NCBI GenBank assembly: GCA_004431415.1
Contig: QPMI01000395.1
Span: 434,001 to 498,000 of the forward strand
Direction of reading: 5' to 3'
DNA: 64,000 nt
From: Cyanophora paradoxa CCMP329
Lineage: Eukaryota; Plantae; Glaucophyta
Part shown: positions 50-27,500 of the stretch, one piece after another
How positions within the stretch are numbered: the stretch's first letter is position 1
How the letters are laid out: each line of letters begins with the position of its first letter
The notes under the pieces: model-generated
Told to the model about the DNA's origin: nothing
What the model saw: the letters and a program-made list of their open reading frames with translations, nothing else
Database searches by the model: none
Program-made: the position numbers and the translations under genes

Positions 50-3000
50 TAGGATACGAGGTCGAGAACGACGAACTTGCTGTCCATGCGGTGGAGATAC
101 GAGAAAATGTTGACCATGAACGAGTACACCGACGGCGACGGGACGCAGAACTGAGGAAATGAAACGTCATCGAAATGAACGAGGGCTAGCCCTGCGCGGC
201 TGCTGCAGGGCGCACCGGCTCTCCGACGGCCTGGCCGATGGAGATACCCTTCGAGTTCCTGATCACACACGTCTGGTTGATGTTGAGGTCTGTGCTGTTG
301 AGGCAGAGACCTGCGAAGACACGAGCTTGAGCAAGTACAAGCGCACAAGATCGAGCGCTCGGGGCGCATGAAATGAAACGGACCGCAGAAGTCGGGCACG
401 AGGCCAGCCGTGCACTCGCTGACGGCGAGGGTAAAGTTGATGGCTTGGGACTCGCGGAACGGGTCGTTGCTCGACAGATTCAGATGCAGTTCCTGGTACT
501 CAGATGCGCGCCGACTGCTCATCGAAACCGCGTAGGTCGCCGTCTGTCCCGGCGCGACCGTTTGCGTCGTCGTCGCGCCCACGCCGGCGATGACGAGCCA
601 CGAGGCCCCGTTGTAGGGGTTCTGGCTGGCGGCCGAAAGGCTCCAAGTCAGGTCCCGGTTGCCCTGGTTGGACACCGACAGGACGGTGCTGAAGGACTCC
701 CCTCGGACAAGGCTCGCGCTGAAGCCGGTGCGCGTCATGGCGAAGACTGGCGTCCGCACGGTGAGTCTGGGCGCTAGCGTGTAGTTGCCACGGAAGCTGT
801 TGCCGTAGACGACCAGCCCCGCAACGTTCACTCCGACCTTTTCCGGGGCGCCGTTGGCGGAGAACATGAACTCCACCAAGACGGATCCGTTTGCGGTGGG
901 TGGCAGCGTGCAGCCATGGGTGGTGCAGGCGCCGGTCGAGCCCTGAATCGCGTAGGCCATCCAGGGCGGCCGAGTCGCCGTGTCGAAGGCGAACGTCAGC
1001 TCACCGTCTCCGGTGTTCGAGAATGCGACGGCTTGGCTGTCGACGCCGTCTGGGTAGGGCAGGGCGAGCGTCTGGAGGCGTGGCACGTCCTGCACGGAAA
1101 GGATGCCGCGCTGCACGGTGAAGGTGTAGGTGACCGACAGAGTCACGGGAGTCACGGAGCCGGCAGAGGCGTAAGCGTTCGTCGAAATCTGCACAACGGT
1201 GGAAACGCTGCTGACGCTGCCCGTGTGGATGCTCTGGAGCTCGACGTGGACGCTGTCGGAGGCGCCGGCTGGGACCGAATCGTTGGCCGTCCTGCTCAGC
1301 GAGAGCCACGGCGGGAGGGCGGACGAGAGGCGCCAGGAGAGGACGCCGTCGCCGGCCTCGTTCGAGATCGTGAGCGTGGTTGAATTTGCCGCCGGCCAGA
1401 GCGTGACGAACGACGCCGAGCTGCCTGCCGGCTGCGCAATGGCAGCCGCCGCGCGGAGCACCGTGACGGTGAGGGCGACGCTCGTGTTCACGACGGGACG
1501 CCGGACGAATGTGACCGTCGCATTGCGATTCGTCAAGCCGAACGGCAGCTTTGAGCTTTCCGCCGCGACGAGGAGCGTAACATTTGCATTTACGGCAATC
1601 GCTGGGAAGTCGAGAGCACCGACGCCCACAAAGCCCGTCGGAAGGATGAGGCGGCCGTCGGAAGTGCTGGCGTCACCCACGTTCCTGATCGTGACCTCCA
1701 TGGGCACCGACGTGGCAGGGTACTGGACGGAGCCAAACTGGATCGGCGAGGCGACGGAGGCAACGGGCGTGTAGAAGCGAACGGAGACGTTCACAGAGAA
1801 GGACGTAGAGTCTCCGAGGGTAGCCCTCAGGCTGTTGCCACCTCCGATGGTCGCCACAGGCGGTCCGTCAGAGGTCTGATTGGACTGCAGAGCCGTGACC
1901 CGCACGAGCCGTGTCCCCTGCGGAGCGATCTCCAGAGATGTAATTACAGTACCCGTGACCGGGTCATTCAGGCGGATCCAGGACGGCATCGTAGGCGTCC
2001 ACGTGAGGTTTGCCAGGATCGGGTTAGCGATGAGGAGGGTCCCGGTCGCGTCGTCGGGGCGGACCGCCTCGATGTGGAGCGTCGTGTTGGGCTCGCGCTG
2101 CTCCAGGCGCACCACGTCCATCGTGAGGTTCACGGGCAGGCGCAGCGCGACGGCGCCGTCCACAACGAAGTCGACGTCCGTGTTGTTCTGCGCCATGTTT
2201 TTGTCCTTGAAAGTCAGAGTGATCGTCGTGTTGGCGTTGCCGGCGAGGACGAATTGCGAGGGCGACACGGCGAGCCAGGCGGTGGCCGAATTCACGACCG
2301 ATACGGTTTGCGGGAGCGGGTGCGGGTTGACGAGCTGGACCGAATCCGTCGGGTCCGTGATTGTGTTGAGCGTCCGGACACTGACGGACGACAGCGAGGG
2401 CCGAAGCTGCGGCACGTATGCCCGAGACACGACCTTCTGCAGTACATTGACTTGCGCGCGGGTGCCTGACCCGGACTCGCCAATGGCGGCGACTAGCGGC
2501 CACGTTTCATCCGACAGGGGCATCAAGGAGCCGACCGCCGTCACCGAGACGGTTACGTGCGTAAGGCGGTTCACGTTCGCGCTGGTCACGTTGCAGAGAA
2601 GCCAGGGGAGGCGGGTGAGGTCGAGCGTGAAGGCCAGGTCGGCGAACGAGAAGTCGTTGTGCAGGCGCAGCACGCGCGTCGTGTTGATCGGCGACAGCTG
2701 GCGGAGCTCGAGGTCCGATATGGCCGCGCCAGTGGCGACGTCCACCGCGCGCAGTGTTGCGTCGAAGACCGAGATGGAGACCTCGACTGTCAAGAGGAGG
2801 CCCTCCGCGTCCACTGCCAACAAAGTCAGAGCTGCCAATCAAAAGCATGACACATTCGAAAGAGTCACCTGTGATGGTCGCGGTATCCGTGTAGAAGGCA
2901 GAGGGATTCATCTGCCCAGACTTGATGTTGATCGCAAGGCTCACATTGCCTTTAGCCGGGATAACGGGCGCGGCGAGGACGGCCTCCAGCCAAGGCTTCC

Positions 3001-6000
3001 CGCTCTCCACAGAAACAGCAACTGCCGTGTCGGCAACGTTGTCACTCAAGTCCCTCACGTAAAGCATGCGGGTGATGTTCTCCGGGCGAATGATGTACGG
3101 CTCTTGCAGCACACGCGTCGAGAAACCGTCCCCCTTGAGGATGGTGATGATGGCTTCCTTCACGTTGACGTCGACTTGAACGGTGATGTTCGGGCTCCCG
3201 CGAAGGACCAGCCTCGCACGGGAGCTCGCGAGGCCGCCGTGCGACGTGTCGAGATTGACCGTGATGTTGAGCCGGACCAGGCCGAACGCGGGCAGCCGGC
3301 CAGAGGTGGGGCTCAGCGAGAGCCACGACGGAATTGACTGCAACGCGAAAGAGAACGGCGTGTCGAAGTCCATCTTGTTTTCGAGCACTATCTCGCGCGT
3401 GCGATTCTCTTGACTGGCTGTGCGCTGCAGCGGGCAGTCAGCAACCGAGCACGAAGATCGCGGGCTCATGATAAAACCCAATCGGCCGACTAACCTTGAT
3501 GTCCTCGTACTTAATCTCGCCTGGCGAGACCTGCACGTCCGGCGAGATGATTTTGAATGAGAGGTGGAGAGACAGAGGAAGTCCTCCTTGCGTGCCCTGC
3601 AAATGAACAAACATCAGGGCACGCACTATCCAATAAATGGCACATCTTTATGGCAACAACGCACGTTAAGGATGATCTCTGTGATGTTACGGAAGAACGA
3701 CGGATCTTCCGTGTATAGTGTAACGGTGATCGCCTGGCTCGCGCCCGGCTCGAGTCGCCCGGCCAAAGGCACCACGGAGAGGTACGTCGGGAGCGCGTCA
3801 AAGCGGAAGTCGAAGGCAGTCCAGAGGCCGTTGCGGAAGACGGTTCCGTTCGAGCCGGTGCGCGGCTCGATCGCAGTGATCGTGAGCGCGCTCGGGTCGC
3901 CGGCGTGGTAGACGTTCGGAGAGCCCACGCGCACGGTGACGTTGAAGGAGGACGGCACCCCCTTGCGCTCGCCGATGCCGAAGACGCTGTACGCGACGAC
4001 GAAGGTCTGCAGCTCGGGCGCTGCGGCAGGCACGTCCGCGCTCGCGAGAGCGACCCTGATGGAGGCCGTCGACAACACATCGGCCAACGAGAACGAGAGC
4101 GGCGCGATCGTAATGAAGGGCGGCAGGCTCGAGGCGTTGATGGCGACGGTCACGCCGACGAGCGCCGTGGCAGGCAGCGACGCTGCAATGCTCGCGGAGA
4201 CGTTGTCCGGGCGGAGGGCCGAGAGCGAGATCGAGGTCTCGCTGAGGACCACCTGCGGCCTGCGGACGCGTGCCGTGATGGTGATCCTGTTCGCGAGCCA
4301 CGGGCGGCCCTGCGCACAAATTATGAATCAGGTTTTGTTTTCCGGGGACCGAACAGTTATCGAGGAGCGCACGGCAATCTCTCCAACGAGCGTGACCGAG
4401 TCCGACTCGGCGGTCATGAGCGTCGAGTCTACATCGAACCGCAACGCGATCGAAGAGTTGGCCGGGATCGTGAAGTTCTGAGCCAGCGAGCCGTCCGGAA
4501 GGGCGATGGCGAGGTACGGCGGAATGAGCGTCGTGTTGAGCCGGATCTCGATGTCCAGAGGCTGGTTGTTGGTGACCGTCGTCGTGCCGTTGGCGCGGTT
4601 CGGGAACGTGGCGACGATGGCCACGGTCGCCTGGCTGACGGAGACGCGATCGAGGGCGTACACCGCGCGGAACGGAAGCTGGTACGGGAGCGACGCCTGC
4701 ACATCGGCGCCGCGCACGCCGTACGAGATAGCGCCCGAGTTGACTTGTGTGACCGCCCGATCCGTGTCGAAGGCCCAGAACAGCGTCTCAGACGCGTTGG
4801 CGGCAATGGCGAGAGTCAGTTGCGAAGGCGTCAGCCAGAGGCCGAATGTCGGGTGCGTAGGCAGAGTCAGGCCGTCGATTTGGAACACGATGGGATAACT
4901 AAAACAAACAGTCAATAAGCAACCGCGCACGCAGAAGATGAAATGACACGCACTCGTTCGGGTTGGTGATCGTAATGGTGTGGTTGATGATGCCCGGGCC
5001 GAAGCCACGGACGTCTAGCCCCGCCGACGGAGCGAAGTCCACGCGCGGAACGCGCACATCCACAGCGACGGGCACGCCAAGCGTGGGCAGGGCAGCGGCC
5101 GGCACCGACAGGGGCGCCACCGTCGCGTTCAAGACCGTTTCGTTGCGCGAAACGACCCGCGCGAGAGCGTTGTTCAACGCCGTCAGCGTAACGGTGAAGT
5201 TGGCGCCAGGCAGCAGGGTGAATTCGGCGGGGGACGCGAGGAGCCAAGAAGGCAGCGACGCCGTCGCGAGGCGGACGGCCTGCTCGGCGCCCTCGAAGCT
5301 GTACGGGTTGCCGTACACGATGGAAAGCTGGGCATCATTCGGCTGAGAGAGCACCAGCAGGGCCGCGGTTGGCTCCACGACGGCCGGCACCCTAGTCTCC
5401 AGGCTCAGACTGAAGGACACGTTCGCGAAATTGCTGCGCTCAAGCAGACCAACGACCGACTGCGCGAGGCTGCCATTGTACTCGAGCGGGAAGCTGCCGG
5501 ACGAGAAAGTGACGTTGACAGTGTAGTTCGCAAGAGGCGAGACGGTAGCCGTCGGCGGGTCGAGCGAGACCCAAGCGGGCAGGCAGCAGCGGAAGTCGAA
5601 TTCGATGGGCGCCCACGCGATCGGGTTGGAGAACTCCAGACGGGAAGAGCGAGCCGCCGGGAGGATGGCAGTGATTTGGACCGCGTTCAGGACTGTCAGC
5701 GTCGGAGTGCGCGTCTCGGCCGTCAGGTTGACCGAGACGAGCGCGGTGCCGCCCTCAATCGAGAGCGCGAGCGTGAAGTTATCGTAGTCCTCCGCCAATC
5801 CCATGGTGACCAGCGTCAGCGTCAAATTCAGAGTCCCCAGCGGAGGCACGCTGCCCGCCGCCGGTTCCACAGCGAACCAGGCCGGAAGGCCCTGCGCCGG
5901 GGCAACCACTTCGAACGCCACCGGCACGAAGTCGATCTGGAAAGGGAACCGTCAAGAAAAAGCAGGTGGGTGCAGGCAGAGGATCGAGAAACCACGCACG

Positions 6001-9000
6001 GGGTTCGAGAGCAGCAGCTCGTACGTGTAGTTGAGGGGCCGCAGGCCGCGGAGGGCGAGAGCGCCCGGGGACGGGACGACGGTCGGGTCCGCGACCATCA
6101 GGTCGTAGTGGAACGAGCCCTGCCGCGGGAGAGTCAGAGTCAGGGCACGTGGGAGCTCTGAGCGTGAATTTCAAGTGGAAGAAGCGGCGCACGGGGTACG
6201 CGAAGTCGCCGGGCTCAAGCCCGCGAGAGACGGCGTACGTGACCTCAAAGCTGGCGAGGCCACTCCTCGGCAGCAGCGTCGTGTTGAGCTCGATTGCGAG
6301 CTCGACCGTGCTATTGGCGGGCACGACAAAGACTGCCGGATAGACGACCGCGACCTCAGCAGAAGCCACCGACCCGTTGAGCAGAATGGACGAGAAGGCG
6401 ACAACAATCGGCTCCGGGAACGGGTTGGAGGCGTTGATGGACACGTTGAAGCGCTTGTTGTACAGCGCGGAGGAGAAGCGGTCCGCGATGCGGACGCGTG
6501 GCGTCTGGACATCGACGGTCACGTTGACGGAAGACGGATAGAAAGCGGCCAAGCTGGCGTCCGAGACCGCATAGAGAGCGGGGAAGGTCCGATGCCCATC
6601 CGCCGTCACGTTCTCCGCGAGGAGACGAGCTGAAACGTTCATGCGTTCACCGGGGCCCAGCATGCCGTCCGCGGGAAGGGCGACGAGCGGCCACGACGAA
6701 TCGTTCAGGAAAGCAAACTGCAAGGGCGACACCAACATGAGAAGCAAGCAGAACCGGATGCATGCAGACGGTTGGGGCGCACCGTCACGTTCGAGAACGA
6801 AACCGGGTTGAAGATCTCAAACGAGAAGGTGAGCGCGCTCGAGCGCAGGCGCGTTCCCAGCTCCACGGGCGACGGTGCGAAGCCCAAGGCCGGGTCGAGG
6901 GCGGAGACGTTGACCGAGAAAGCGAAGACGGTCTCGTTGAACCCGTCGCGGCGGCGGATGCCGGCGACCTGCACGAAATCCTGCGCCGGTGCCGAAGCCG
7001 AGAGGAATTCCACCGTGAAAGACGACGTGGACATCACGGGGAGGACGCCGGCCGCCGGCGTAACCGCGATCCACGACGCGTTCAGGACCTGCAGCTCGAA
7101 CGGCACGTCCAGGTCAAACGTGTTGTTCACCTCCACGCGCTGCGAGCTGGCGACCGGCCGGAGGTGCGAGAAAGCGAGCGCGGACGGGACGGCGTCGAAA
7201 AGCGCGCGGTACACGCGGACTGCGACCTTGAAGAGGTCGGACTTGACCTCGTAGACGCCCTCGCGGCCGTACACGCGAAGCGAGCACGCGACGGAGAAGG
7301 ATGACGCGTAGCCGTACGGCAGGACCCCCGAGTCGAGGGTGAGCCGGAATGTGCCCACGCTTCCAGGGGCCAGCCGCGAGGCGTTGGCCGGGGAGGCCTC
7401 CAGGAACGCCGATCCATTCAACGCCGCGTCCGCCACAAACGGCCAGGCCGACGCGAAAACGCCGACGTCGATCGCGTATTCCATGACATTTGTAACGTTG
7501 ACGTAGTGGTCGACGCGGTCTGGCTTGTACGCCACAATCGCAAATACAGAAGGGCTTCCGACAACGTCTGTCGGCTTCAGCACTTGGACAGATACGGACG
7601 TGGCAGCCACGACGACGCCTGCTGCCCGAAGAGTGATTCGAGCGATACCTCTGCTGCGTAGAGCGACGAACTGAACGGAAGCGGAGCTGACAAGAACACC
7701 AGAGGTCGCCAAAATGACTCCACGGGTGGATTCGATGGAGAAGGCATCAAAGAAGACGGGCGCTCCATTCTTCGCGAACGTAAAGTTGCATCGGGTCGAC
7801 TCGCCTGCCCAAACGGCAAGGTCGTCACACACGATCGATGAGGTGCGATCAGGCACAGCTGCGGTGATAAAAAACGATTAGCAGAGGGTAGCGAGAGAAA
7901 TCCCACGGCTGGGCGAAAACTGACAGAGAATATCAATGCGCGAAGAAGCGACCATAATGCTGAAGTTGAATGCCCTAACAACGCGAATGTCGACACCGGT
8001 CGAATTAGTTCCGTTCGAAGAGCCAGCCCACACGCTGAACACGAAAGCGGACGAGGAAGAGCTTCCCAACGAAACTGTACGGGTGCCATTGCTTGCAAGT
8101 ACCACCACGAGCTCCGATGGATTGACAATTACAGCGACACCGCACGAACGAAGCTCCAGTGTGCAGTTGAGCAACGTGTTCGGCCGCACGACCGTCTTCT
8201 CGCACAGCAGCGTCGACGTGCTGTCCGGCACCGCATCTGCGCGCAGCAAAGGCGTCGGAAACGTGCATGCCCAAATCACATAACTGGACGTCGCTGCTTA
8301 TGATCAGGCGCACCTCTGGGCTTGGGCGCGGCGCCCGTCGCCGGCCAGGACGGCGGCGACGGCCAGTTTGGCTTCGGGAAGAGCGTTCCCAGCTCGAACA
8401 CGAACGCCGACACCGCCACCAGCACCTCTTCACGGCCTTCCACCACCAGCCGCAGCGTCGCCGAGCTCGCCCCCAGCGCCGCCCGCCGCGAGTCCAGCGT
8501 CACTGCCAGCTCCACGCTCTCGTTCGGGCCCACCGAGCCCCGCCGCGGCCACACCTGCACGTGCGCCGGTACGCTCGCCTCGTCCACCTCGAACGAAACC
8601 GCCGTGAACTCAGCTGGGTTCCGCAGCCGCAGCCGCTGCATGGATGAACGCGGCCGCGGCGCGCTGAACTTCAGCTCCGCTGCGCTCGCCTCCAGCCGCG
8701 CGGGCACCACCGTCACGTTCACCCCCGACGACCGCGCCGGGAACCGCAGCTCGCCAGGCACCCGCGACGACGACGCCTCCCCGTCCACCGCCACCAGCCG
8801 CGTCCCGTCCAGCACGCCGACGCCCGCGCCCCGCACCAGCGCCGTCGCCGCCGCCTGCCCGCGCGCCGGCACCACCACCGTGGACGGCCACACCGACACC
8901 GCCGGCTCGCTCCGTGCAAAGATCGCCACCACCGGCGACCCCAGCGGGTTCGTCAGCCGCATCTCCACTTGCGACACCTGCGTCGACAGCACCGAGACGG

Positions 9001-12000
9001 CGCCCAACAGCAGCTCCACGCTCAGCTGCGGCGTCTGCAGGTCCACCGACAGGTTGAACGCCATCGGGTACTTCCGCAGGCCCCAGCCCCAGCCCCAGTC
9101 CGCATCCGCCAGATCCAACATCACCGGCACCGCCTGCGGGCCGTCCAGCACCACGCTCGCCGACGGCACCTCCGCCTCCACGGGAAGCGCCGCCCCAGCC
9201 TCGACGCGGTCCGACGCCGGCCACAGCCGCCCCGTCGAGTTCGCCGACACCGCGTACGCCACCGCCGCGAACGAGTACGGGTTCCGGAGCACCACGGGCT
9301 TGCTCATCCGCCTCGCTCGCAGCAGCACGCCGAAGTCCGTGTTCTGCGCCTCCAGGCGCGGCGTACGCGCCTCCGACGCCAGCGGCACCGCAAAGACCGC
9401 GAGCTCTGTCCCGTTCGCCAGCCGGCGCCTGCCCGTGATCGTTTCGCTGACCAGGTCATCTGCTTGATACTCGCTGAGCACCGTCACCTCCAGATAGGCG
9501 GAGCCGTTGGCCGCAAGATACACAGTCGACGGCTGCACCGACACGAACGGCACCGTTGCGCCCACCGACATGACCATGCTCACGGGCTTCGCGTTGATGA
9601 CCCGCATCCACATCGGACGCGCGACTGGCCGCAGCTGTGTCACGTTCAGGCTCGCAGGCTCCGTCTCGAACCGCGCCTCGAACGACTCCGCAGTCACCGA
9701 GAAGAGCGTCACGGCCAGCGCCCCCGTCGCCCGCGGCGCCTTGATCACGCCACGCACGGGGATCGCGCCGAGCGGCGTGAGCAGCCCCGGCGCCGCCCGC
9801 CACGATACGAAGGTTGCATTGATGTGCACAGATTGCTGCGACCCCAGTGTCCCGTTGCTCGGCGACACCGACAGCCATGACGAGAGCGGCTCCACGGAGC
9901 GGTCCGCCGACCAGTCGATCGCGAAGTCCGTCGGGTTGCTGCGCGACCCTCCGTCAGCGCCCCGAATCCCCGACGACAGCCAACAGCCCACCGCACCTCA
10001 CGTTGAGGAGCACCGTCTGCGTGTCGAGGTGGAAGACCTGGAAGCCCACTTGCCGAGGCGAGACCACGATGTCGTTGACAGTGAGCACCTCCACGCGGAT
10101 AGTGGTTCTCGCCACCACCTTCCCGTTCGCGAGAGCAACAATGACAGCGTTTCCGCGCGACCGTCCAGCGAGGAACACGAAGGACGTAGAGCTGAAGATC
10201 GACGGCAGCTCCCCCGACACCTCGCCATTTCTCACGGCCAGCGACACGCCATCCCAGGCCACCGCCGCCCCGGCCCGCCGCAGCTGGAGCGTGCACGTCG
10301 TCGTCTCGCTGCCCCACAGGCCCGTCGAGCTGCAGTGCAGGCTCGAGCTCTGGTCCGGCATCCCTGCGCCCCGCGTCCCGCATCAGCTCCTGAGCTGCCG
10401 CCCGCCGCCCCGCAAAACGCACCCAGCATCTCGAGGGCGAACGAAGCCAGACGTCCCGCCGTCAAGTTGAAGCCAACGCGCTCCGCGACGACCGTTGCAT
10501 TGGCCGTCGCGTTCGTCGCGTTCGCGGCCCCGCCGATGGGCACGCTCAGGAAGAACTCGTGGGAGGCCAGCGGCCCGAGCCACACGCTGTTGCCGGTCGC
10601 ATTGCGCCCCGAGATCACCGCCACCCGCAGCGACGACGGGTCCGCCTGCACGGGCACCCCGCAGGACCGCAGCGCCAGCGTGCAGTTGAGCAACGTGTTC
10701 GGCCGCACGACCGTCTTCTCGCACAGCAGCGTCGACGTGCTGTCCGGCACCGCATCTGCGCGCAGCAAAGGCGTCGGAAACGTGCATGCCCAAATCACAT
10801 AACTGGACGTCGCTGCTCATGATCAGGCGCACCTCTGGGCTTAGGCGCGGCGCCCGTCGCCGGCCAGGACGGCGGCGACGGCCAGTTTGGCTTCGGGAAG
10901 AGCGTTCCCAGCTCGAACACGAACGCCGACACCGCCACCAGCACCTCTTCACGGCCTTCCACCACCAGCCGCAGCGTCGCCGAGCTCGCCCCCAGCGCCG
11001 CCCGCCGCGAGTCCAGCGTCACTGCCAGCTCCACGCTCCCGTTCGGGCCCACCGAGCCCCGCCGCGGCCACACCTCCACGTGCGCCGGTATGCTCGCCTC
11101 GTCCACCTCGAACGAAACCGCCGTGAACTCAGCTGGGTTCCGCAGCCGCAGTCGCTGCATGGATGAACGCGGCCGCGGCGCGCTGAACTTCAGCTCCGCC
11201 GCGCTCGCCTCCAGCCGCGCGGGCACCACCGTCACGTTCACCCCCGACGACCGCGCCGGGAACCGCAGCTCGCCAGGCACCCGCGACGACGACGCCTCCC
11301 CGTCCACCGCCACCAGCCGCGTCCCGTCCAGCACGCCGACGCCCGCGCCCCGCACCAGCGCCGTCGCCGCCGCCTGCCCGCGCGCCGGCACCACCACCGT
11401 GGACGGCCACACCGACACCGCCGGCTCGCTCCGCGCGAAGATCGCCACCACCGGCGACCCCAGCGGGTTCGTCAGCCGCATCTCCACTTGCGACACCTGC
11501 GTCGACAGCACCGAGACGGCGCCCGACAGCAGCTCCACGCCCAGCTGCGGCGTCTGCAGGTCCACCGACAGGTTGAACGCCATCGGGTACTTCCGCAGGC
11601 CCCAGCCCCAGCCCCAGTCCGCATCCGCCAGATCCAACATCACCGGCACCGCCTGCGGGCCGTCCAGCACCACGCTCGCCGACGGCACCTCCGCCTCCAC
11701 GGGAAGCGCCGCCCCAGCCTCGACGCGGTCCGACGCCGGCCACAGCCGCCCCGTCGAGTTCGCCGACACCGCGTACGCCACCGCCGCGAACGAGTACGGG
11801 TTCCGGAGCACCACGGGCTTGCTCATCCGCCTCGCTCGCAGCAGCACGCCGAAGTCCGTGTTCTGCGCCTCCAGGCGCGGCGTACGCGCCTCCGACGCCA
11901 GCGGCACCGCAAAGACCGCGAGCTCTGTCCCGTTCGCCAGCCGGCGCCTGCCCGTGATCGTTTCGCTGACCAGGTCATCTGCTTGATACTCGCTGAGCAC

Positions 12001-15000: not shown

Positions 15001-18000
15001 GAATCCCCGACGACAGCCAACAGCCCACCGCACCTCACGTTGAGGAGCACCGTCTGCGTGTCGAGGTGGAAGACCTGGAAGCCCACTTGCCGAGGCGAGA
15101 CCACGATGTCGTTGACAGTGAGGACCTCCACTCGGATAGTGGTTCTCGCCACCACCTTCCCGTTCGCGAGAGCAACAATGACAGCGTTTCCACGCGAGCC
15201 GCCGGCGCGGAACACGAAGGAAGTCGAGCTGAAGACCGGCGGAAGCTCCCCCGACACCTCGCCATTTCTCACGGCCAGCGACACGCCGTCCCAGGCCACC
15301 GCCGCCCAGGCCCGCCGCAGCTGGAGCGTGCACGTCGTCGTCTCGCTGCCCCACAGGCCCGTCGAGCTGCAGTGCAGGCTCGAGCTCTGGTCCGGCATCC
15401 CTGCGCCCCGCGTCCCGCATCAGCTCCTGAGCTGCCGCCCGCCGCCCCGCAAAACGCACCCAGCATCTCGAGGGCGAACGAAGCCAGACGTCCCGCCGTC
15501 AAGTTGAAGCCAACGCGCTCCGCGACGACCGTTGCATTGGCCGTCGCGTTCGTCGCGTTCGCGGCCCCGCCGATGGGCACGCTCAGGAAGAACTCGTGGG
15601 AGGCCAGCGGCCCGAGCCACACGCTGTTGCCGGTCGCATTGCGCCCCGAGATCACCGCCACCCGCAGCGACGACGGGTCCGCCTGCACGGGCGCCCCGCA
15701 GGACCGCAGCGCCAGCGTGCAGTTGAGCAACGTGTTCGGCCGCACGACCGTCTTCTCGCACAGCAGCGTCGACGTGCTGTCCGGCACCGCATCTGCGCGC
15801 AGCAAAGGCGTCGGAAACGTGCATGCCCAAATCACATAACTGGACGTCGCTGCTCATGATCAGGCGCACCTCTGGGCTTAGGCGCGGCGCCCGTCGCCGG
15901 CCAGGACGGCGGCGACGGCCAGTTTGGCTTCGGGAAGAGCGTTCCCAGCTCGAACACGAACGCCGACACCGCCACCAGCACCTCTTCACGACCTTCCACC
16001 ACCAGCCGCAGCGTCGCCGAGCTCGCCCCCAGCGCCGCCCGCCGCGAGTCCAGCGTCACTGCCAGCTCCACGCTCCCGTTCGGGCCCACCGAGCCCCGCC
16101 GCGGCCACACCTCCACGTGCGCCGGTACGCTCGCCTCGTCCACCTCGAACGAAACCGCCGTGAACTCAGCTGGGTTCCGCAGCCGCAGTCGCTGCATGGA
16201 TGAACGCGGCCGCGGCGCGCTGAACTTCAGCTCCGCCGCGCTCGCCTCCAGCCGCGCGGGCACCACCGTCACGTTCACCCCCGACGACCGCGCCGGGAAC
16301 CGCAGCTCGCCAGGCACCCGCGACGACGACGCCTCCCCGTCCACCGCCACCAGCCGCGTCCCGTCCAGCACGCCGACGCCCGCGCCCCGCACCAGCGCCG
16401 TCGCCGCCGCCTGCCCGCGCGCCGGCACCACCACCGCGGACGGCCACACCGACACCGCCGGCTCGCTCCGCGCGAAGATCGCCACCACCGGCGACCCCAG
16501 CGGGTTCGTCAGCCGCATCTCCACTTGCGACACCTGCGTCGACAGCACCAAGACGGCGCCCGACAGCAGCTCCACGCCCAGCTGCGGCGTCTGCAGGTCC
16601 ACCGACAGGTTGAACGCCATCGGGTACTTCCGCAGGCCCCAGCCCCAGCCCCAGTCCGCATCGGACAGATCCAGCTTCACCGGCACCGCCTGCGGGCCGT
16701 CCAGCACCACGCTCGCCGACGGCACCTCCGCCTCCACGGGAAGCGCCGCCCCAGCCTCGACGCGGTCCGACGCCGGCCACAGCCGCCCCGTCGAGTTCGC
16801 CGACACCGCGTACGCCACCGCCGCGAACGAGTACGGGTTCCGGAGCACCACGGGCTTGCTCATCCGCCTCGCTCGCAGCAGCACGCCGAAGTCCGTGTTC
16901 TGCGCCTCCAGGCGCGGCGTACGCGCCTCCGACGCCAGCGGCACCGCGAAGACCGCGAGCTCTGTCCCGTTCGCCAGCCGGCGCCAGCCGTCCACCATCG
17001 CGCTCGCCAGGTCGTCGAGTTGGTACTCGCTGGACACCGTCACGTAGAGATCCACGGAGCCGTTCGCTGGCAGATACACAGTCGACGGCTGCACCGACAC
17101 GAACGGCACCGATGCGCCCACCGACACCACCGTGCTCACGGGCTTGACGTTGATGACCCGCAGCCGCGTCGAGCGCGCAGTCGGCCGTAGCTGTGTCACG
17201 TTCAGGCTCGCAGGCTCCGTCTCGAACCGCGCCTCGAACGACTCCGCAGTCACCGAGAAGAGCGTCACGGCCAGCGCCCCCGTCGCCCGCGGCGCCTTGA
17301 TCACGCCCCGCACGGGGATCGCGCCGAGCGGCGTAAGCAGCCCCAGCGCCGCCCGCCACGATGCAAAGGTCGCGTTGATCCGCACAGACTGCCGCGACCC
17401 CAGTGTCCCGTTGCTCGGCGACACCGACAGCCACGACAAGAGCGGCTCCACGGAGCGGTCCGCCGACCAGTCGATCGCGAAGTCCGTCGGGTTGCTGCGC
17501 GACCCTCCATCAGCGCCCTGAATCCCCGACGACAGCCAACAGCCCACCGCACCTCACGTTGAGGAGCACCGTCTGCGTGTCGAGGTGGAAGACCTGGAAG
17601 CCCACTTGCCGAGGCGAGACCACGATGTCGTTGACAGTGAGGACCTCCACGCGGATAGTGGTTCTCGCCACCACCTTCCCGTTCGCGAGAGCAACAATAA
17701 CCGCATCTCCACGCGAGCCGCCGGCGCGGAACACGAAGGACGTCGAGCTGAAGACCGGCGGCAGCTCCCCCGACACCTCGCCGTTCGTCACGGCCAGCGA
17801 CACGCCGTCCCAGGCCACCGCCGCCCAGGCCCGCCGCAGCTGGAGCGTGCACGTCGTCGTCTCGCTGCCCCACAGGCCCGTCGAGCTGCAGTGCAGGCTC
17901 GAGCTCTGGTCCGGCATCCCTGCGCCCCGCGTCCCGCATCAGCTCCTGAGCTGCCGCCCGCCGCCCCGCAAAACGCACCCAGCATCTCGAGGGCGAACGA

Positions 18001-21000
18001 AGCCAGACGTCCCGCCGTCAAGTTGAAGCCAACGCGCTCCGCGACGACCGTTGCATTGGCCGTCGCGTTCGTCGCGTTCGCGGCCCCGCCGATGGGCACG
18101 CTCAGGAAGAACTCGTGGGAGGCCAGCGGCCCGAGCCACACGCTGTTGCCGGTCGCATTGCGCCCCGAGATCACCGCCACCCGCAGCGACGACGGGTCCG
18201 CCTGCACGGGCGCCCCGCAGGACCGCAGCGCCAGCGTGCAGTTGAGCAACGTGTTCGGCCGCACGACCGTCTTCTCGCACAGCAGCGTCGACGTGCTGTC
18301 CGGCACCGCATCTGCGCGCAGCAAAGGCGTCGGAAACGTGCATGCCCAAATCACATAACTGGACGTCGCTGCTCATGATCAGGCGCACCTCTGGGCTTAG
18401 GCGCGGCGCCCGTCGCCGGCCAGGACGGCGGCGACGGCCAGTTTGGCTTCGGGAAGAGCGTTCCCAGCTCGAACACGAACGCCGACACCGCCACCAGCAC
18501 CTCTTCACGGCCTTCCACCACCAGCCGCAGCGTCGCCGAGCTCGCCCCCAGCGCCGCCCGCCGCGAGTCCAGCGTCACTGCCAGCTCCACGCTCCCGTTC
18601 GGGCCCACCGAGCCCCGCCGCGGCCACACCTCCACGTGCGCCGGTACGCTCGCCTCGTCCACCTCGAACGAAACCGCCGTGAACTCAGCTGGGTTCCGCA
18701 GCCGCAGTCGCTGCATGGATGAACGCGGCCGCGGCGCGCTGAACTTCAGCTCCGCCGCGCTCGCCTCCAGCCGCGCGGGCACCACCGTCACGTTCACCCC
18801 CGACGACCGCGCCGGGAACCGCAGCTCGCCAGGCACCCGCGACGACGACGCCTCCCCGTCCACCGCCACCAGCCGCGTCCCGTCCAGCACGCCGACGCCC
18901 GCGCCCCGCACCAGCGCCGTCGCCCCCGCCTGCCCGCGCGCCGGCACCACCACCGCGGACGGCCACACCGACACCGCCGGCTCGCTCCGCGCGAAGATCG
19001 CCACCACCGGCGACCCCAGCGGGTTCGTCAGCCGCATCTCCACTTGCGACACCTGCGTCGACAGCACCGAGACGGCGCTAGACAGCAGTTCCACGCTCAG
19101 CTGCGGCGTCTGCAGGTCCACCGACAGGTTGAACGCCATCGGGTACTTCCGCAGGCCCCAGCCCCAGCCCCAGTCCGCATCGGACAGATCCAGCTTCACC
19201 GGCACCGCCTGCGGGCCGTCCAGCACCACGCTCGCCGACGGCACCTCCGCCTCCACGGGAAGCGCCGCCCCAGCCTCGACGCGGTCCGACGCCGGCCACA
19301 GCCGCCCCGTCGAGTTCGCCGACACCGCGTACACCACCGCCGCGAACGAGTACGGGTTCCGGAGCACCACGGGCTTGCTCATCCGCCTCGCTCGCAGCAG
19401 CACGCCGAAGTCCGTGTTCTGCGCCTCCAGGCGTGGCGTCCGCGCCTCCGACGCCAGCGGCACCGCGAAGACCGCGAGCTCTGTCCCGTTCGCCAGCCGG
19501 CGCCAGCCGTCCACCATCGCGCTCGCCAGGTCGTCGAGTTGGTACTCGCTGGACACCGTCACGTAGAGATCCACGGAGCCGTTCGCTGGCAGATACACAG
19601 TCGACGGCTGCACCGACACGAACGGCACCGATGCGCCCACCGACACCACCGTGCTCACGGGCTTGACGTTGATGACCCGCAGCCGCGTCAAGCGCGCAGT
19701 CGGCCGTAGCTGTGTCACGTTCAGGCTCGCAGGCTCCGTCTCGAACCGCGCCTCGAACGACTCCGCAGTCACCGAGAAGAGCGTCACGGCCAGCGCCCCC
19801 GTCGCCCGCGGCGCCTTGATCACGCCCCGCACGGGGATCGCGCCGAGCGGCGTGAGCAGCCCCGGCGCCGCCCGCCACGATGCAAAGGTCGCGTTGATCC
19901 GCACAGACTGCCGCGGCGCCAGCGTCCCGTTGCTCGGCGACACCGACAGCCACGACGAGAGCGGCTCCACGGAGCGGTCCGCCGACCAGTCGATCGCGAA
20001 GTTCGTCGGGTTGCTGCGCGACCCTCCATCAGCGCCCCGAATCCCCGACGACAGCCAACAGCCCACCGCACCTCACGTTGAGGAGCACCGTCTGCGTGTC
20101 GAGGTGGAAGACCTGGAAGCCCACTTGCCGAGGCGAGACCACGATGTCGTTGACAGTGAGGACCTCCACGCGGATAGTGGTTCTCGCCACCACCTTCCCG
20201 TTCGCGAGAGCAACAATAACCGCATCTCCACGCGAGCCGCCGGCGCGGAACACGAAGGACGTCGAGCTGAAGACCGGCGGCAGCTCCCCCGACACCTCGC
20301 CGTTCGTCACGGCCAGCGACACGCCGTCCCAGGCCACCGCCGCCCAGGCCCGCCGCAGCTGGAGCGTGCACGTCGTCGTCTCGCTGCCCCACAGGCCCGT
20401 CGAGCTGCAGTGCAGGCTCGAGCTCTGGTCCGGCATCCCTGCGCCCCGCGTCCCGCATCAGCTCCTGAGCTGCCGCCCGCCGCCCCGCAAAACGCACCCA
20501 GCATCTCGAGGGCGAACGAAGCCAGACGTCCCGCCGTCAAGTTGAAGCCAACGCGCTCCGCGACGACCGTTGCATTGGCCGTCGCGTTCGTCGCGTTCGC
20601 GGCCCCGCCGATGGGCACGCTCAGGAAGAACTCGTGGGAGGCCAGCGGCCCGAGCCACACGCTGTTGCCGGTCGCATTGCGCCCCGAGATCACCGCCACC
20701 CGCAGCGACGACGGGTCCGCCTGCACGGGCGCCCCGCAGGACCGCAGCGCCAGCGTGCAGTTGAGCAACGTGTTCGGCCGCACGACCGTCTTCTCGCACA
20801 GCAGCGTCGACGTGCTGTCCGGCACCGCATCTGCGCGCAGCAAAGGCGTCGGAAACGTGCATGCCCAAATCACATAACTGGACGTCGCTGCTCATGATCA
20901 GGCGCACCTCTGGGCTTAGGCGCGGCGCCCGTCGCCGGCCAGGACGGCGGCGACGGCCAGTTTGGCTTCGGGAAGAGCGTTCCCAGCTCGAACACGAACG

Positions 21001-24000
21001 CCGACACCGCCACCAGCACCTCTTCACGGCCTTCCACCACCAGCCGCAGCGTCGCCGAGCTCGCCCCCAGCGCCGCCCGCCGCGAGTCCAGCGTCACTGC
21101 CAGCTCCACGCTCCCGTTCGGGCCCACCGAGCCCCGCCGCGGCCACACCTCCACGTGCGCCGGTACGCTCGCCTCGTCCACCTCGAACGAAACCGCCGTG
21201 AACTCAGCTGGGTTCCGCAGCCGCAGTCGCTGCATGGATGAACGCGGCCGCGGCGCGCTGAACTTCAGCTCCGCCACGCTCGCCTCCAGCCGCGCGGGCA
21301 CCACCGTCACGTTCACCCCCGACGACCGCGCCGGGAACCGCAGCTCGCCAGGCACCCGCGACGACGACGCCTCCCCGTCCACCGCCACCAGCCGCGTCCC
21401 GTCCAGCACGCCGACGCCCGCGCCCCGCACCAGCGCCGTCGCCGCCGCCTGCCCGCGCGCCGGCACCACCACCGCGGACGGCCACACCGACACCGCCGGC
21501 TCGCTCCGCGCGAAGATCGCCACCACCGGCGACCCCAGCGGGTTCGTCAGCCGCATCTCCACTTGCGACACCTGCGTCGACAGCACCGAGACGGCGCTAG
21601 ACAGCAGCTCCACGCTCAGCTGCGGTGTCTGCAGGTCCACCGACAGGTTGAACGCCATCGGGTACTTCCGCAGGCCCCAGCCCCAGCCCCAGTCCGCATC
21701 GGACAGATCCAGCTTCACCGGCACCGCCTGCGGGCCGTCCAGCACCACGCTCGCCGACGGCACCTCCGCCTCCACGGGAAGCGCCGCCCCAGCCTCGACG
21801 CGGTCCGACGCCGGCCACAGCCGCCCCGTCGAGTTCGCCGACACCGCGTACGCCACCGCCGCGAACGAGTACGGGTTCCGGAGCACCACGGGCTTGCTCA
21901 TCCGCCTCGCTCGCAGCAGCACGCCGAAGTCCGTGTTCTGCGCCTCCAGGCGTGGCGTCCGCGCCTCCGACGCCAGCGGCACCGCGAAGACCGCGAGCTC
22001 TGTCCCGTTCGCCAGCCGGCGCCAGCCGTCCACCATCGCGCTCGCCAGGTCGTCGAGTTGGTACTCGCTGGACACCGTCACGTAGAGATCCACGGAGCCG
22101 TTCGCCGGCAGATACACAGTCGACGGCTGCACCGACACGAACGGCACCGATGCGCCCACCGACACCACCGTGCTCACGGGCTTGACGTTGATGACCCGCA
22201 GCCGCGTCGAGCGCGCAGTCGGCCGTAGCTGTGTCACGTTCAGGCTCGCAGGCTCCGTCTCGAACCGCGCCTCGAACGACTCCGCGGTCACCGAGAAGAG
22301 CGTCACGGCCAGCGCCCCCGTCGCCCGCGGCGCCTTGATCACGCCCCGCACAGGGATCGCGCCGAGCGGCGTGAGCAGCCCCGGCGCCGCCCGCCACGAT
22401 GCAAAGGTCGCGTTGATCCGCACAGACTGCCGCGGCGCCAGCGTCCCGTTGCTCGGCGACACCGACAGCCACGACGAGAGCGGCTCCACGGAGCGGTCCG
22501 CCGACCAGTCGATCGCGAAGTTCGTCGGGTTGCTGCGCGACCCTCCATCAGCGCCCCGAATCCCCGACGACAGCCAACAGCCCACCGCACCTCACGTTGA
22601 GGAGCACCGTCTGCGTGTCGAGGTGGAAGACCTGGAAGCCCACTTGCCGAGGCGAGACCACGATGTCGTTGACAGTGAGGACCTCCACGCGGATAGTGGT
22701 TCTCGCCACCACCTTCCCGTTCGCGAGAGCAACAATAACCGCATCTCCACGCGAGCCGCCCGCGCGGAACACGAAGGACGTCGAGCTGAAGACCGGCGGC
22801 AGCTCCCCCGACACCTCGCCGTTCGTCACGGCCAGCGACACGCCGTCCCAGGCCACCGCCGCCCAGGCCCGCCGCAGCTGGAGCGTGCACGTCGTCGTCT
22901 CGCTGCCCCACAGGCCCGTCGAGCTGCAGTGCAGGCTCGAGCTCTGGTCCGGCATCCCTGCGCCCCGCGTCCTGCATCAGCTCCTGAGCTGCCGCCCGCC
23001 GCCCCGCAAAACGCACCCAGCATCTCGAGGGCGAACGAAGCCAGACGTCCCGCCGTCAAGTTGAAGCCAACGCGCTCCGCGACGACCGTTGCATTGGCCG
23101 TCGCGTTCGTCGCGTTCGCGGCCCCGCCGATGGGCACGCTCAGGAAGAACTCGTGGGAGGCCAGCGGCCCGAGCCACACACTGTTGCCGGTCGCATTGCG
23201 CCCCGAGATCACCGCCACCCGCAGCGACGACGGGTCCGCCTGCACGGGCGCCCCGCAGGACCGCAGCGCCAGCGTGCAGTTGAGCAACGTGTTCGGCCGC
23301 ACGACCGTTTTCTCGCACAGCAGCGTCGACGTGCTGTCCGGCACCGCATCTGCGCGCAGCAAAGGCGTCGGAAACGTGCATGCCCAAATCACATAACTGG
23401 ACGTCGCTGCTCATGATCAGGCGCACCTCTGGGCTTAGGCGCGGCGCCCGTCGCCGGCCAGGACGGCGGCGACGGCCAGTTTGGCTTCGGGAAGAGCGTT
23501 CCCAGCTCGAACACGAACGCCGACACCGCCACCAGCACCTCTTCACGGCCTTCCACCACCAGCCGCAGCGTCGCCGAGCTCGCCCCCAGCGCCGCCCGCC
23601 GCGAGTCCAGCGTCACTGCCAGCTCCACGCTCCCGTTCGGGCCCACCGAGCCCCGCCGCGGCCACACCTCCACGTGCGCCGGTACGCTCGCCTCGTCCAC
23701 CTCGAACGAAACCGCCGTGAACTCAGCTGGGTTCCGCAGCCGCAGTCGCTGCATGGATGAACGCGGCCGCGGCGCGCTGAACTTCAGCTCCGCCGCGCTC
23801 GCCTCCAGCCGCGCGGGCACCACCGTCACGTTCACCCCGACGACCGCGCCGGGAACCGCAGCTCGCCAGGCACCCGCGACGACGACGCCTCCCCGTCCAC
23901 CGCCACCAGCCGCGTCCCGTCCAGCACGCCGACGCCCGCGCCCCGCACCAGCGCCGTCGCCGCCGCCTGCCCGCGCGCCGGCACCACCACCGCGGACGGC

Positions 24001-27000
24001 CACACCGACACCGCCGGCTCGCTCCGCGCGAAGATCGCCACCACCGGCGACCCCAGCGGGTTCGTCAGCCGCATCTCCACTTGCGACACCTGCGTCAACA
24101 GCACCGAGACGGCGCCCGACAGCAGCTCCACGCCCAGCTGCGGCGTCTGCAGGTCCACCGACAGGTTGAACGCCATCGGGTACTTCCGCAGGCCCCAGCC
24201 CCAGCCCCAGTCCGCATCGGACAGATCCAGCTTCACCGGCACCGCCTGCGGGCCGTCCAGCACCACGCTCGCCGACGGCACCTCCGCCTCCACGGGAAGC
24301 GCCGCCCCAGCCTCGACGCGGTCCGACGCCGGCCACAGCCGCCCCGTCGAGTTTGCCGACACCGCGTACGCCACCGCCGCGAACGAGTACGGGTTCCGGA
24401 GCACCACGGGCTTGCTCATCCGCCTCGCTCGCAGCAGCACGCCGAAGTCCGTGTTCTGCGCCTCCAGGCGTGGCGTCCGCGCCTCCGACGCCAGCGGCAC
24501 CGCGAAGACCGCGAGCTCTGTCCCGTTCGCCAGCCGGCGCCAGCCGTCCACCATCGCGCTCGCCAGGTCGTCGAGTTGGTACTCGCTGGACACCGTCACG
24601 TAGAGATCCACGGAGCCGTTCGCCGGCAGATACACAGTCGACGGCTGCACCGACACGAACGGCACCGATGCGCCCACCGACACCACCGTGCTCACGGGCT
24701 TGACGTTGATGACCCGCAGCCGCGTCGAGCGCGCAGCTGGCCGCAGCTGTGTTACGTTCAGGCTCGCAGGCTCCGTCTCGAACCGCGCCTCGAACGACTC
24801 CGCAGTCACCGAGAAGAGCGTCACGGCCAGCGCCCCCGTCGCCCGCGGCGCCTTGATCACGCCCCGCACGGGGATCGCGCCGAGCGGCGTAAGCAGCCCC
24901 AGCGCCGCCCGCCACGATGCAAAGGTCGCGTTGATCCGCACAGACTGCCGCGGCGCCAGCGTCCCGTTGCTCGGCGACACCGACAGCCACGACGAGAGCG
25001 GCTCCACGGAGCGGTCCGCCGACCAGTCGATCGCGAAGTTCGTCGGGTTGCTGCGCGACCCTCCATCAGCGCCCCGAATCCCCGACGACAGCCAACAGCC
25101 CACCGCACCTCACGTTGAGGAGCACCGTCTGCGTGTCGAGGTGGAAGACCTGGAAGCCCACTTGCCGAGGCGAGACCACGATGTCGTTGGCAGTGAGGAC
25201 TTCCACAGGGATCGCGATTCTCGCAACCACCTTCCCGCTTGCGAGGACGACGATGACCGCATTTTCTTGTGAGCCTCCGGCGCGGAACACGAAGGACGTC
25301 GAGCTGAAGACCGGCGGCAGCTCCCCCGACACCTCGCCGTTCGTCACGGCCAGCGACACGCCGTCCCAGGCCACCGCCGCCCAGGCCCGCCGCAGCTGGA
25401 GCGTGCACGTCGTCGTTTCGCCGCCCCACAGGCCCGTCGAGCTGCAGTGCAGGCTCGAGCTCTGGTCCGGCATCCCTGCGCCCCGCGTCCCGCATCAGCT
25501 CCTGAGCTGCCGCTCCCGGCCCCGCTCCGCAAAACGCACCCAGCATCTCGAGGGCGAACGAAGCCAGACGTCCCGCCGTCAAGTTGAAGCCAACGCGCTC
25601 CGCGACGACCGTTGCATTGGCCGTCGCGTTCGTCGCGTTCGCGGCCCCGCCGATGGGCACGCTCAGGAAGAACTCGTGGGAGGCCAGCGGCCCGAGCCAC
25701 ACGCTGTTGCCGGTCGCATTGCGCCCCGAGATCACCGCCACCCGCAGCGACGACGGGTCCGCCTGCACGGGCGCCCCGCAGGACCGCAGCGCCAGCGTGC
25801 AGTTGAGCAAGGTGTCGGGTCGCGCGACCGTCTTCTCGCACAGCAGCGTCGACGTGCTGTCCGGCACCGCGTCTGCGGGCAGCCCCGGGGGCGTCAGCCT
25901 CCGCCCCGCACGGTGCGGATTCGCGTTCAGATCGCGCACCGGGCATGGGGGCGGCGGCCGGCCAGGAAGACGGGGACATGGATGCTGGGTTGGAGGCGGC
26001 CGCGGCGACGTCGACGACCATGATGGAGAGGGAGGCCAGATCGACGGGCACGCGCAGGGCCGGACGGTCCGCGACGCCCACCTCGGCGCGGAGCGCGAGC
26101 GCCGCCGGGGCGTTGCGGGGCGCGAAGGCCGAGACGAGCAGGATCCGGAGCTGGAGGGTTCCGTACCCCGGCAGGCTCCCGGCGTCGGACGACGGGAGGG
26201 CCCAGGGCGGGATCGACTCCGGGAGGAGCCGCCAGCGGATCGGGAAGGGGGAGGGGTTGCGGATCTCGACGAAGAAGGGGGAGGTGGCAGGGGCGTAGAG
26301 CCAGACGGTGGAGGAGGCGGGGGACGCCACGAGGGGGACGTCCGGGATGTGGCGGACGGCGAGGCGGGCCGTGACGAAGGCGCCGCCGGGGAGCGACACG
26401 CCGACGCGCACGTCGCCGGTCAGCTGGCCCGCCTCGAAGCCGAAGTACGTGACGGAGACGAAGGGCGCGAAGCGGCCCTCGACGGCCCCGCCGTCGGAGA
26501 AGAGGCGCAGCGCGGCCTCGGGGACCAGCGCCGGCTCGCCCTCCGCCGTCCGGAGCACCAGCACGCACCGCGTCGACTCGCCCGCGTACAGCTGCGTCGC
26601 CGCGCATCGCACGGTCGAGTGCGCCGCGGACGGGTCGCCTGGCGCCGCGTCAGAGAGGCGAGGCGGGGCGGGCCGGGGCGCGGGGGGGCTCGGGGCGCCG
26701 GGGCGCACTCAGGACGCGAACGACGATAGAGGCGACAACGGTGCCGTCAACGAAGCGCGCGACTTCGACCCTCGCCTCGCGGCGGGCGCCCCAGAGCGAA
26801 AGGCCGAAGTCGAGGGCGGGGCCCCGCGCGGCCGCGGGCGCCGGGGCGTACTCGGCCGGCCGGCCGTCGACGGCGACGCGAAGGTAGACGTCGCTGTCGA
26901 AGGCCGCGGGGACGGGCGCCCCGCAGCTGCGCGCGTGGAAGGTGCAGGCGACGGCCCGCCGCCACGGCTCCACGTGCGTCGCATTGCACTCGATCGACGA

Positions 27001-27500
27001 AGTAGTGTCGACCGCTGCGCCGCGCAGAGTTCGTGAGCACGGCGAAAGGCGAAGGATAGCGGAGCGCGGCACGCACAAGGCGCAGGCGAGGAGGCGATCC
27101 GCGTGGCGGCAGACCAGTGCTCCAGCGCCCCGTTCGATTCGCCGGTCGGCTGCGCTGCCTGGAGCCAGGAACGCACAGCGTAGTACTTCAGGGTCTCCTG
27201 AAACGACACCGGCTCCTCCACGGGCGTGCGCGTCGCTGCAAGACGGTGAGGCACGAAAACGAATCGGCTTCGAGCGACAGGACAGGTCAAGCGTAGGGGC
27301 GGGTCGTCGTGGGCACCTTCGGCGACCCACGCATCGTGCGCGAAGATGATGGTGAGGACCAGGGCAGCGAGAGCGGCGCGCGACGCGCTGCCGCTCCGCG
27401 ACCCCCGTCTGTGGCGCCAACTTCGCGCGTCCTGGCTCTTCTCGACCACGCTTACGGACTTGGACTCTTCCGACATGCTTTCCATGCGTGTGCTGAACAT
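50..27500 (-). CDS. Giant multi-exon extracellular glycoprotein of tandem Ig-like (BACON/ASH-type) beta-sandwich domains and Cys-paired modules; 3' end lies beyond the left edge
   Basis: Minus-strand ORF fragments join in frame across short introns (e.g. 8237-8313, 9939-9996, 10364-10422, 311-419). Start is ATG 27500 or 27476, followed by a basic stretch and a hydrophobic segment (RAALAALVLTIIFA). ~100-aa units recur with W-L-S-V/L-S-P-x-x-G-x-L/V and N-P motifs, and N-x-S/T sequons are dense. The apparent TAG at 49-51 overlaps a GTGCGT donor. Confidence 0.85.
8161..25875. repeat. Intragenic tandem array: 7 full copies of a 2,519-bp unit plus a short partial eighth
   Basis: Anchor gtgcagttgagcaa recurs at 8161, 10680, 13199, 15717, 18236, 20755, 23274 and 25797. 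Spacing is 2519 except 2518 and 2523 where indels occur. The ORF track repeats with the same period. Confidence 0.98.

Follow-up and report, generated by a model that had tools for sequence, protein, structure and literature searches.

The 64,000-nucleotide (nt) window analyzed here, from contig QPMI01000395.1 of the glaucophyte Cyanophora paradoxa CCMP329, contains on its minus strand an intron-rich gene that runs from a first ATG at position 27500 past the left window edge, with a splice donor at position 49 indicating that the gene exits the window there. The part of the protein that falls within the window amounts to ~8,250 amino acids (aa), and given that the gene continues leftwards, the complete product would have at least 8,250 residues. 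An iterative census with hidden Markov models (HMMs) built from the exon translations identified immunoglobulin (Ig)-like domains (1 + 7 × 5 + ~20) and nine pairs of cysteine-containing modules, denoted CysA and CysB, i.e., ~74 beta-sandwich domains in the window part of the protein. The order of the modules is a hydrophobic N-terminal segment, one CysA-CysB-Ig-linker module, seven cassettes, a ninth CysA-CysB pair and ~20 diverged Ig-like domains. The ~36 introns are short and of the GT-AG type, with GTGCG-type donors and CTGAY branch sites located 15–21 nt from the acceptor. The coding frame shows the G+C content at third codon positions (GC3) that is typical of the host, ~0.9, and the expected frame is free of stops over ~25 kb, in a window with a G+C content of 62–82%. 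We conclude that the region is one predicted gene of C. paradoxa for a giant modular protein that is badly annotated in public resources.

A modular minus-strand gene for a protein of more than 8,000 aa, open at the window edge, had been proposed in the first-pass annotation of this stretch, and the present analysis bears out both claims. The module anatomy given there (N-terminal module, seven cassettes, ninth Cys pair and ~20 Ig-like domains) is correct in detail according to the HMM census, and the hydrophobic N-terminal segment that it noted is present. The description of the gene as one spliced frame holds for a single long modular gene, but not for an unbroken frame as assembled, which is interrupted by two 1-nt deletions and an ambiguous junction at 6120–6192.

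The N-Terminal Region

The first exon (27317–27500; here and below, all features of the gene are on the minus strand) contains three in-frame candidate starts, at 27500, 27485 and 27476, the last of which is used in the public gene model for this end of the gene, g9872. The exon encodes a charged n-region of ~33 aa followed by a 13-residue hydrophobic core at 27339–27377; with a value of 2.75, this is the top Kyte-Doolittle 13-residue window of the whole protein, ~33 residues past the annotated start. On hydropathy, we predict that this segment is a signal peptide or a signal anchor. An 81-nt intron (27236–27316, GTGCCC...TTGCAG), also used in the public model, separates this exon from the next one (27077–27235), which contributes ~55 aa ahead of the first CysA; an alternative donor at 27176 was rejected since it is in the wrong phase. 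After a 62-nt intron (27015–27076) comes the exon of the first CysA module (26709–27014), which encodes three Cys, and after a 70-nt intron (26639–26708) the exon that combines the first CysB module, one ASH-like Ig domain and a Pro/Ser linker (25940–26638).

A Sevenfold Array of Exon-Intron Cassettes

Seven tandem cassettes occupy positions 8314–25939, with a unit spacing of 2518–2523 bp and with 97–100% identity over most blocks and 89–92% in two blocks. Each cassette consists of a junction intron, a CysA exon, an intron, a CysB exon, another intron, and an exon that encodes five ASH-like Ig domains along with a Pro-rich linker of ~25 aa. In unit 3, which we take as the reference (18389–20907; 2,519 bp), these are the junction intron (20831–20907, 77 nt), the CysA exon (20498–20830), an intron (20439–20497, 59 nt), the CysB exon (20072–20438), an intron (20014–20071, 58 nt) and the Ig exon (18389–20013), all three introns being of the GT-AG type. 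The unit exons of 333, 367 and 1,625 nt sum up to 2,325 nt, or 775 codons, so that successive units are in frame. A shorter junction intron of 30 nt leads into a stop codon and was discarded in favor of the 77-nt one, which keeps the frame and agrees with g9872.

The units form two ordered subtypes, units 1–4 and units 5–7, with 206 alignment columns variable among units. When the unit exons were concatenated, for the substitution counts only, the pN/pS ratio between the subtypes was ~0.4, rising to 0.6 in a variable patch (unit residues 330–410) from 0.2–0.3 in the remainder of the unit. These ratios demonstrate purifying selection on the coding sequence of the array. The introns of units 2–7 differ at only 0–2 of 194 positions and the synonymous divergence of the exons between subtypes is 6–7%, a combination that fits patchy gene conversion. 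The array would then have originated by recent tandem duplication of the exon-intron block and would have been homogenized by gene conversion. The clustering of the subtype differences at unit residues 330–410 is compatible with a mosaic pattern of gene conversion or, alternatively, with variation being maintained in a single Ig domain.

On the opposite strand, two long stop-free open reading frames (ORFs), each of 408 aa, overlap the cassettes in antisense orientation (19651–20877 and 22170–23396, plus strand). Many overlapping ORFs of this kind are present in table S6 of the genome paper (PMC6704402), and the antisense ORFs are probably a by-product of the 70% G+C content.

The Diverged Region Downstream of the Array

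Downstream of the array, the ninth CysA exon (7925–8236) is diverged and is followed by a 66-nt intron (7859–7924) and by an exon of 358 codons (6783–7858) that encodes the ninth CysB and ~2.5 ASH-like Ig domains, and with which the extensive HMMER search described below was run. Approximately 17 more diverged ASH-like Ig domains follow at 500–6717, in exons with the approximate limits 6717–6193, 6119–6000, 5936–4954, 4898–4373, 4309–3665, 3424–2869 and 2813–500; below 6.7 kb, the exon boundaries were drawn from the sequence only. The last Ig domain is followed by the start of a C-terminal region of another type (1–383), which contains Cys, is encoded in short exons and includes the donor at 49. 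Open frames with high GC3 are retained throughout the diverged C-terminal third.

The introns at 4899–4953, 5937–5999, 6718–6782 and 20014–20071 all interrupt the ASH-like domain in the same place, right after a conserved Asn-Pro motif. Such a recurring position fits growth of the array through duplication of exon-intron blocks.

The Repeating Domain is Related to Hydin-Type ASH Domains

Exons were searched one by one, and the only spliced sequence searched was the public protein g9872. When a profile of 21 of the repeating domains was compared with the sequences of solved structures, the best matches were Chlamydomonas Hydin (1.9e-20 and 7.6e-19), mouse Hydin (1.3e-16) and FAP47 (5.7e-8), followed by weaker matches to CFAP65, the MSP domains of VAP and PapD-like chaperones; no BACON chain was found at E ≤ 1 in this search. 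The Pfam matches of single exons are weak and mutually consistent (CFAP65 Ig, HYDIN_VesB_CFA65-like_Ig, Cep192, MSP, ASH, OCRL-ASH and BACON_2), and the unit Ig exon exceeds the Pfam cut-offs for PF22544, PF24507 and PF25249, with HYDIN_VesB_CFA65-like_Ig and the CFAP65 Ig families among the entries above threshold. The AlphaFold2 model of the first Ig domain of the unit (Ig1) has a mean pLDDT of 62 and is confident only at residues 21–72; in a Foldseek search with this model, all of the first ten matches and most of those listed overall, with E-values of 3e-3 or weaker, were MSP, OCRL-ASH, Hydin, CEP192 and PapD-like domains. In the domain alignment, a near-invariant Asn precedes a W-x-x-x-x-P motif, which we take to be the order of motifs in ASH/MSP domains. 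Hydin, CFAP47 and CFAP65, the closest profile matches, share with the array a conserved Asn before a W/F-x-x-x-P...G-x-L strand and likewise consist of very long arrays of ~100-aa ASH-type beta-sandwiches. On the strength of these profile and predicted fold similarities, we assign the repeating domain to the Hydin-type (Hydin/CFAP65) ASH/PapD-like domains and not to the bacterial or phage BACON domains.

The connection to BACON is confined to a part of the array. BACON_2 (PF19190, “viral BACON”) passes its cut-off of 25 bits on the first Ig domain of each unit only (36.8 and 35.5 bits, range 35–37), the others scoring 17–20 bits, and matches only 4 of the 21 domains even at E < 0.1; it is also the only entry in the precomputed Pfam list of g9872. 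The canonical BACON domain (PF13004), at 12.5–16.1 bits, never reaches its cut-off of 25. A PHROGs scan yielded nothing and neither did NCBIfam on nine exons, so that the label “choice-of-anchor D” is not supported. The stretch W-L-S-V-S-P-x-x-G-T-L is common to BACON_2, BACON and the Ig domains of the array. The first-pass annotation had interpreted this stretch as a sign of BACON, BACON_2 or ASH folds and had labeled the domains bacterial/phage-like BACON-type. The label is not supported, given that profile and fold matches are to the eukaryotic ASH/MSP superfamily; as for the motif, the link to ASH stands, that to BACON_2 stands for the first Ig domain only, and that to canonical BACON falls below the cut-off. 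The more general claim of Ig-like beta-sandwich domains is supported by the profile and by the CysA model.

The CysA and CysB Modules

An alignment of CysA with CysB shows that the two are homologs, with invariant Ser8, Cys12 and Cys25 and a third Cys in CysA, and substantiates the common pattern that had been noticed in the first pass. Neither the Pfam search with the CysA and CysB exons nor a search of the sequences in the Protein Data Bank with the CysA/CysB profile produced any matches. The AlphaFold2 model of CysA (pLDDT 72.8, pTM 0.67) is a seven-strand sandwich that superposes on macroglobulin MG domains, FdeC, invasin, filamin and IPT domains (Z 8–10, TM ~0.7), and an independent feature search with CysB pointed to Big_2, NUP210 and invasin Ig domains. 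With MG2 of C4, C3 and alpha-2-macroglobulin and with FdeC/InvD, the likeness of CysA is at the level of the fold only, at 9–14% identity, and the Cys12-Cys25 pair is specific to CysA/CysB and sets them apart from MG domains and from the Ig-like domains of invasin, intimin and FdeC. According to the CysA model and the CysB feature search, the two modules have a generic Ig-like fold with a disulfide pattern of their own.

Frame Breaks and the Public Annotation

The frame of the gene as assembled is broken twice within the array, in both cases in a run of G. At 23834–23842, six of the units have GGGGG and unit 1 has GGGG (near 23838); at 14266–14274, six units have GGGG and unit 5 has GGG (near 14270). 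The C. paradoxa genome, which is intron-rich with 67.6% G+C, was assembled from PacBio RSII reads, polished with Illumina reads mapped at 95% identity, and annotated with BRAKER1 gene models (PMC6704402). Because short reads would not be uniquely placeable in units that are 98–100% identical, homopolymer deletions are the error type to be expected here, and we take the two frame breaks to be probable assembly errors. The junction at 6120–6192 could be either a canonical 73-nt intron, which would excise the apparent last beta-strand of one Ig domain, or a third frame error.

When 1.84 billion representative proteins were searched in full with HMMER, the sole match of the 358-aa exon (E = 2.5e-15, 27% identity) was the 1,080-aa EukProt protein tig00020510_g9872.t1 of C. 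paradoxa, which is the N-terminus of the giant gene itself. This model starts at the third ATG (27476), ends exactly at the G-run deletion in unit 1, and reproduces three of the junctions predicted here, namely linker to CysA, CysA to CysB, and CysB to Ig; the agreement of splice junctions is limited to this RNA-trained model and the first 1,080 aa that it covers. The absence of an identical self-match for the 358-aa exon among the 1.84 billion representatives implies that public databases either lack an annotation for the portion of the gene past the first frameshift or subsume this portion under g9872 as cluster representative.

A 4.8-kb Trinity transcript with an ORF of 1,613 aa, open at both ends, is assigned to g9871, the model that adjoins g9872 (PMC6704402, table S6). 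The g9871 model may be a continuation of the giant gene, in which case the transcript would be RNA evidence for it.

Relatives of the Protein

In the 1.84 billion representatives and in 5.8 billion clusters, the only protein found was this fragment of the gene itself, g9872, and at E ≤ 1e-3 the 358-aa exon matched neither Hydin nor any other non-self protein among the representatives. Word-based protein searches, which cover only proteins of 0.55–1.75 times the query length, returned nothing for the unit Ig exon and for the 770-aa C-terminal exon, and only g9872 itself for its residues 100–1080. The initial impression that the architecture is not that of any described eukaryotic protein thus stands. 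Full-length orthology to Hydin, which had been named as the finding that would speak against this impression, was not detected; given the lack of an exon-level Hydin match at E ≤ 1e-3 and the presence of the hydrophobic N-terminus, the sequons and CysA/CysB, the gene was rejected as a Hydin orthologue.

Predicted Glycosylation and Export

The protein is rich in N-x-S/T sequons, with 82 in 3,458 non-redundant residues compared with 27.4 ± 4.5 in composition-preserving shuffles, a three-fold enrichment at ~12 standard deviations; the maximum among 1,000 shuffles was 45. Scaled to the protein, this corresponds to about 170 predicted sequons. The conserved cysteines are found in CysA (three each) and CysB (two each), with none in the unit Ig exons; outside CysB, the diverged exons C1, C3 and C7 encode one, two and three isolated cysteines, respectively. 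A hydropathy scan detected no hydrophobic 19-mer typical of transmembrane segments in the window part of the protein, the C-terminus of which lies beyond the window. The sequon enrichment, the confinement of conserved cysteines to CysA/CysB and the hydrophobic N-terminus together suggest that the protein passes through the secretory pathway, and they speak against a Hydin-like role in the axoneme. We consider it likely that the gene encodes a giant exported glycoprotein, a structural filament of the cell surface built of nine CysA/CysB pairs and runs of ASH-type Ig domains, as the first-pass annotation had surmised in proposing a long glycosylated extracellular filament.

Under this model, the signal peptide or signal anchor would direct the protein into the secretory pathway, and the nine disulfide-type CysA/CysB pairs, with their macroglobulin/invasin-like fold, would alternate with the runs of ASH/PapD-like Ig domains, the Pro-rich linkers being short and placed only between the cassettes of the array. 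With ~74 domains and ~170 N-glycans, the product could be a stiff, sugar-coated rod of a few hundred nanometers, either secreted or held by the C-terminal part outside the window. Such a filament might serve as a cell coat, as an adhesion or tether fiber, or as a component of flagellar hairs or mucocysts.

Several points weigh against this interpretation. Known ASH-domain proteins are intracellular; the n-region ahead of the hydrophobic core is unusually long and charged, and the signal call is an argument from hydropathy only. The assembled sequence is truncated by two frameshifts at ~1,080 aa and contains a third, ambiguous junction (6120–6192), and the Ig1 model is confident in its core only (mean pLDDT 62). 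Finally, the C-terminus, which would carry any anchor and any catalytic or channel part, is outside the window.

Alternative Explanations

The nearest solved relatives of the repeating domain, Hydin, FAP47 and CFAP65, together with the fact that Cyanophora is a flagellate, could suggest an intracellular, axonemal protein of the central pair, in which the N-terminal hydrophobic segment would be incidental. Hydin, CFAP47 and CFAP65 are cytosolic or axonemal and lack a signal sequence, glycosylation and CysA/CysB, in contrast to the giant protein with its hydrophobic N-terminal core, three-fold enrichment of sequons (~12 standard deviations above shuffles) and nine interspersed Cys-domain pairs with conserved Cys. 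Besides, the 358-aa exon has no Hydin match at the threshold given above, the Pfam list of g9872 contains BACON_2 only, and no Hydin-type region other than ASH was recognized in the exons scanned, no search having been aimed at one. We therefore regard an axonemal role as very unlikely. A still more remote origin, by horizontal transfer of a bacterial or phage BACON surface protein or from a contaminant, would account for the BACON_2 match in the first Ig domain of each unit but is extremely improbable in view of the ~36 short GT-AG introns, whose GTGCG donors and CTGAY branch sites are of the host type, the host GC3, the absence of PHROGs and NCBIfam matches, the subthreshold scores of canonical BACON, the lack of any bacterial or viral relative of the 358-aa exon at E ≤ 1e-3 among the 1.84 billion representatives, and the profile and fold matches to the eukaryotic ASH/MSP superfamily.

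The other alternatives concern the integrity of the gene. Taken at face value, the two 1-nt deletions and the ambiguous junction, along with the public model that stops at the first deletion, would indicate a decaying or truncated gene with real frameshifts, of which only the first ~1,080 residues are made. This is unlikely, considering that PacBio RSII reads underlie the assembly and both deletions affect runs of G, in units where short-read polishing is not unique, and that the sequence downstream retains a GC3 of ~0.9, more than 20 kb without stops in the expected frame, pN/pS of 0.2–0.6 and sequon enrichment. The splitting of the region in the public annotation and the difficulty of assembling a 17.6-kb array of 2.5-kb units might alternatively point to several adjacent genes or transcripts, or to an artifactual number of cassettes. 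We consider this quite unlikely as well: adjoining cassettes are always joined through an intron of compatible phase, start and stop signals being absent between them, and the 206 variable columns in two ordered subtypes are unlike a collapsed or inflated repeat. The reading that we favor accordingly remains a single gene for an exported, N-glycosylated filament protein.

Flanking Sequences

Just upstream of the gene (28000–30000, e.g., 29553–29692), the G+C content rises to 82%, and an 18/54-nt tandem repeat is present in ~7 copies. Further upstream, an exon on the plus strand (35579–35830) with a Yip1-domain match above the cut-off (PF04893, 34.3 bits) belongs to a neighboring conserved gene.

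Implications

The domain family identified here is known, and so is the general class of giant surface proteins with tandem Ig domains. What is new is the occurrence of Hydin-type ASH domains in an apparently extracellular glycosylated array, the CysA/CysB pair, and the lack of detectable relatives. The array is also a clean example of protein lengthening by tandem duplication of an entire exon-intron cassette.

Chlamydomonas mastigoneme protein MST1 and similar flagellar-hair glycoproteins are secreted, heavily glycosylated filaments with tandem Ig-like domains and disulfides. No sequence similarity of the giant protein to MST1 was detected, and the analogy is functional only, the giant protein being approximately four times longer. 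The cells of Cyanophora bear flagellar hairs of two kinds as well as mucocysts, and their plasma membrane has a knobbly surface (PMC6704402); each of these might harbor a filament of this type. We tentatively raise the possibility that Hydin-type ASH domains, known in eukaryotes up to now chiefly from intracellular proteins and described as building blocks of ciliary, centrosomal and Golgi proteins (e.g., PMC4094338), have been redeployed in a glaucophyte as an exported N-glycosylated filament that could be the long-sought protein of one type of Cyanophora flagellar hair or of the mucocyst thread.

In practical terms, the analysis locates two or three probable homopolymer errors in the reference assembly, where they disrupt a giant gene, and the public annotation shrinks a candidate structural component of more than 8,000 residues to a fragment of 1,080 aa. 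Glaucophytes are one of the three lineages with primary plastids, and their surface, flagellar hairs and extrusomes are almost uncharacterized at the molecular level. The candidate described here would place the ASH/PapD-like domain, a textbook intracellular module of the cilium and the centrosome, in an array that is apparently extracellular and glycosylated.

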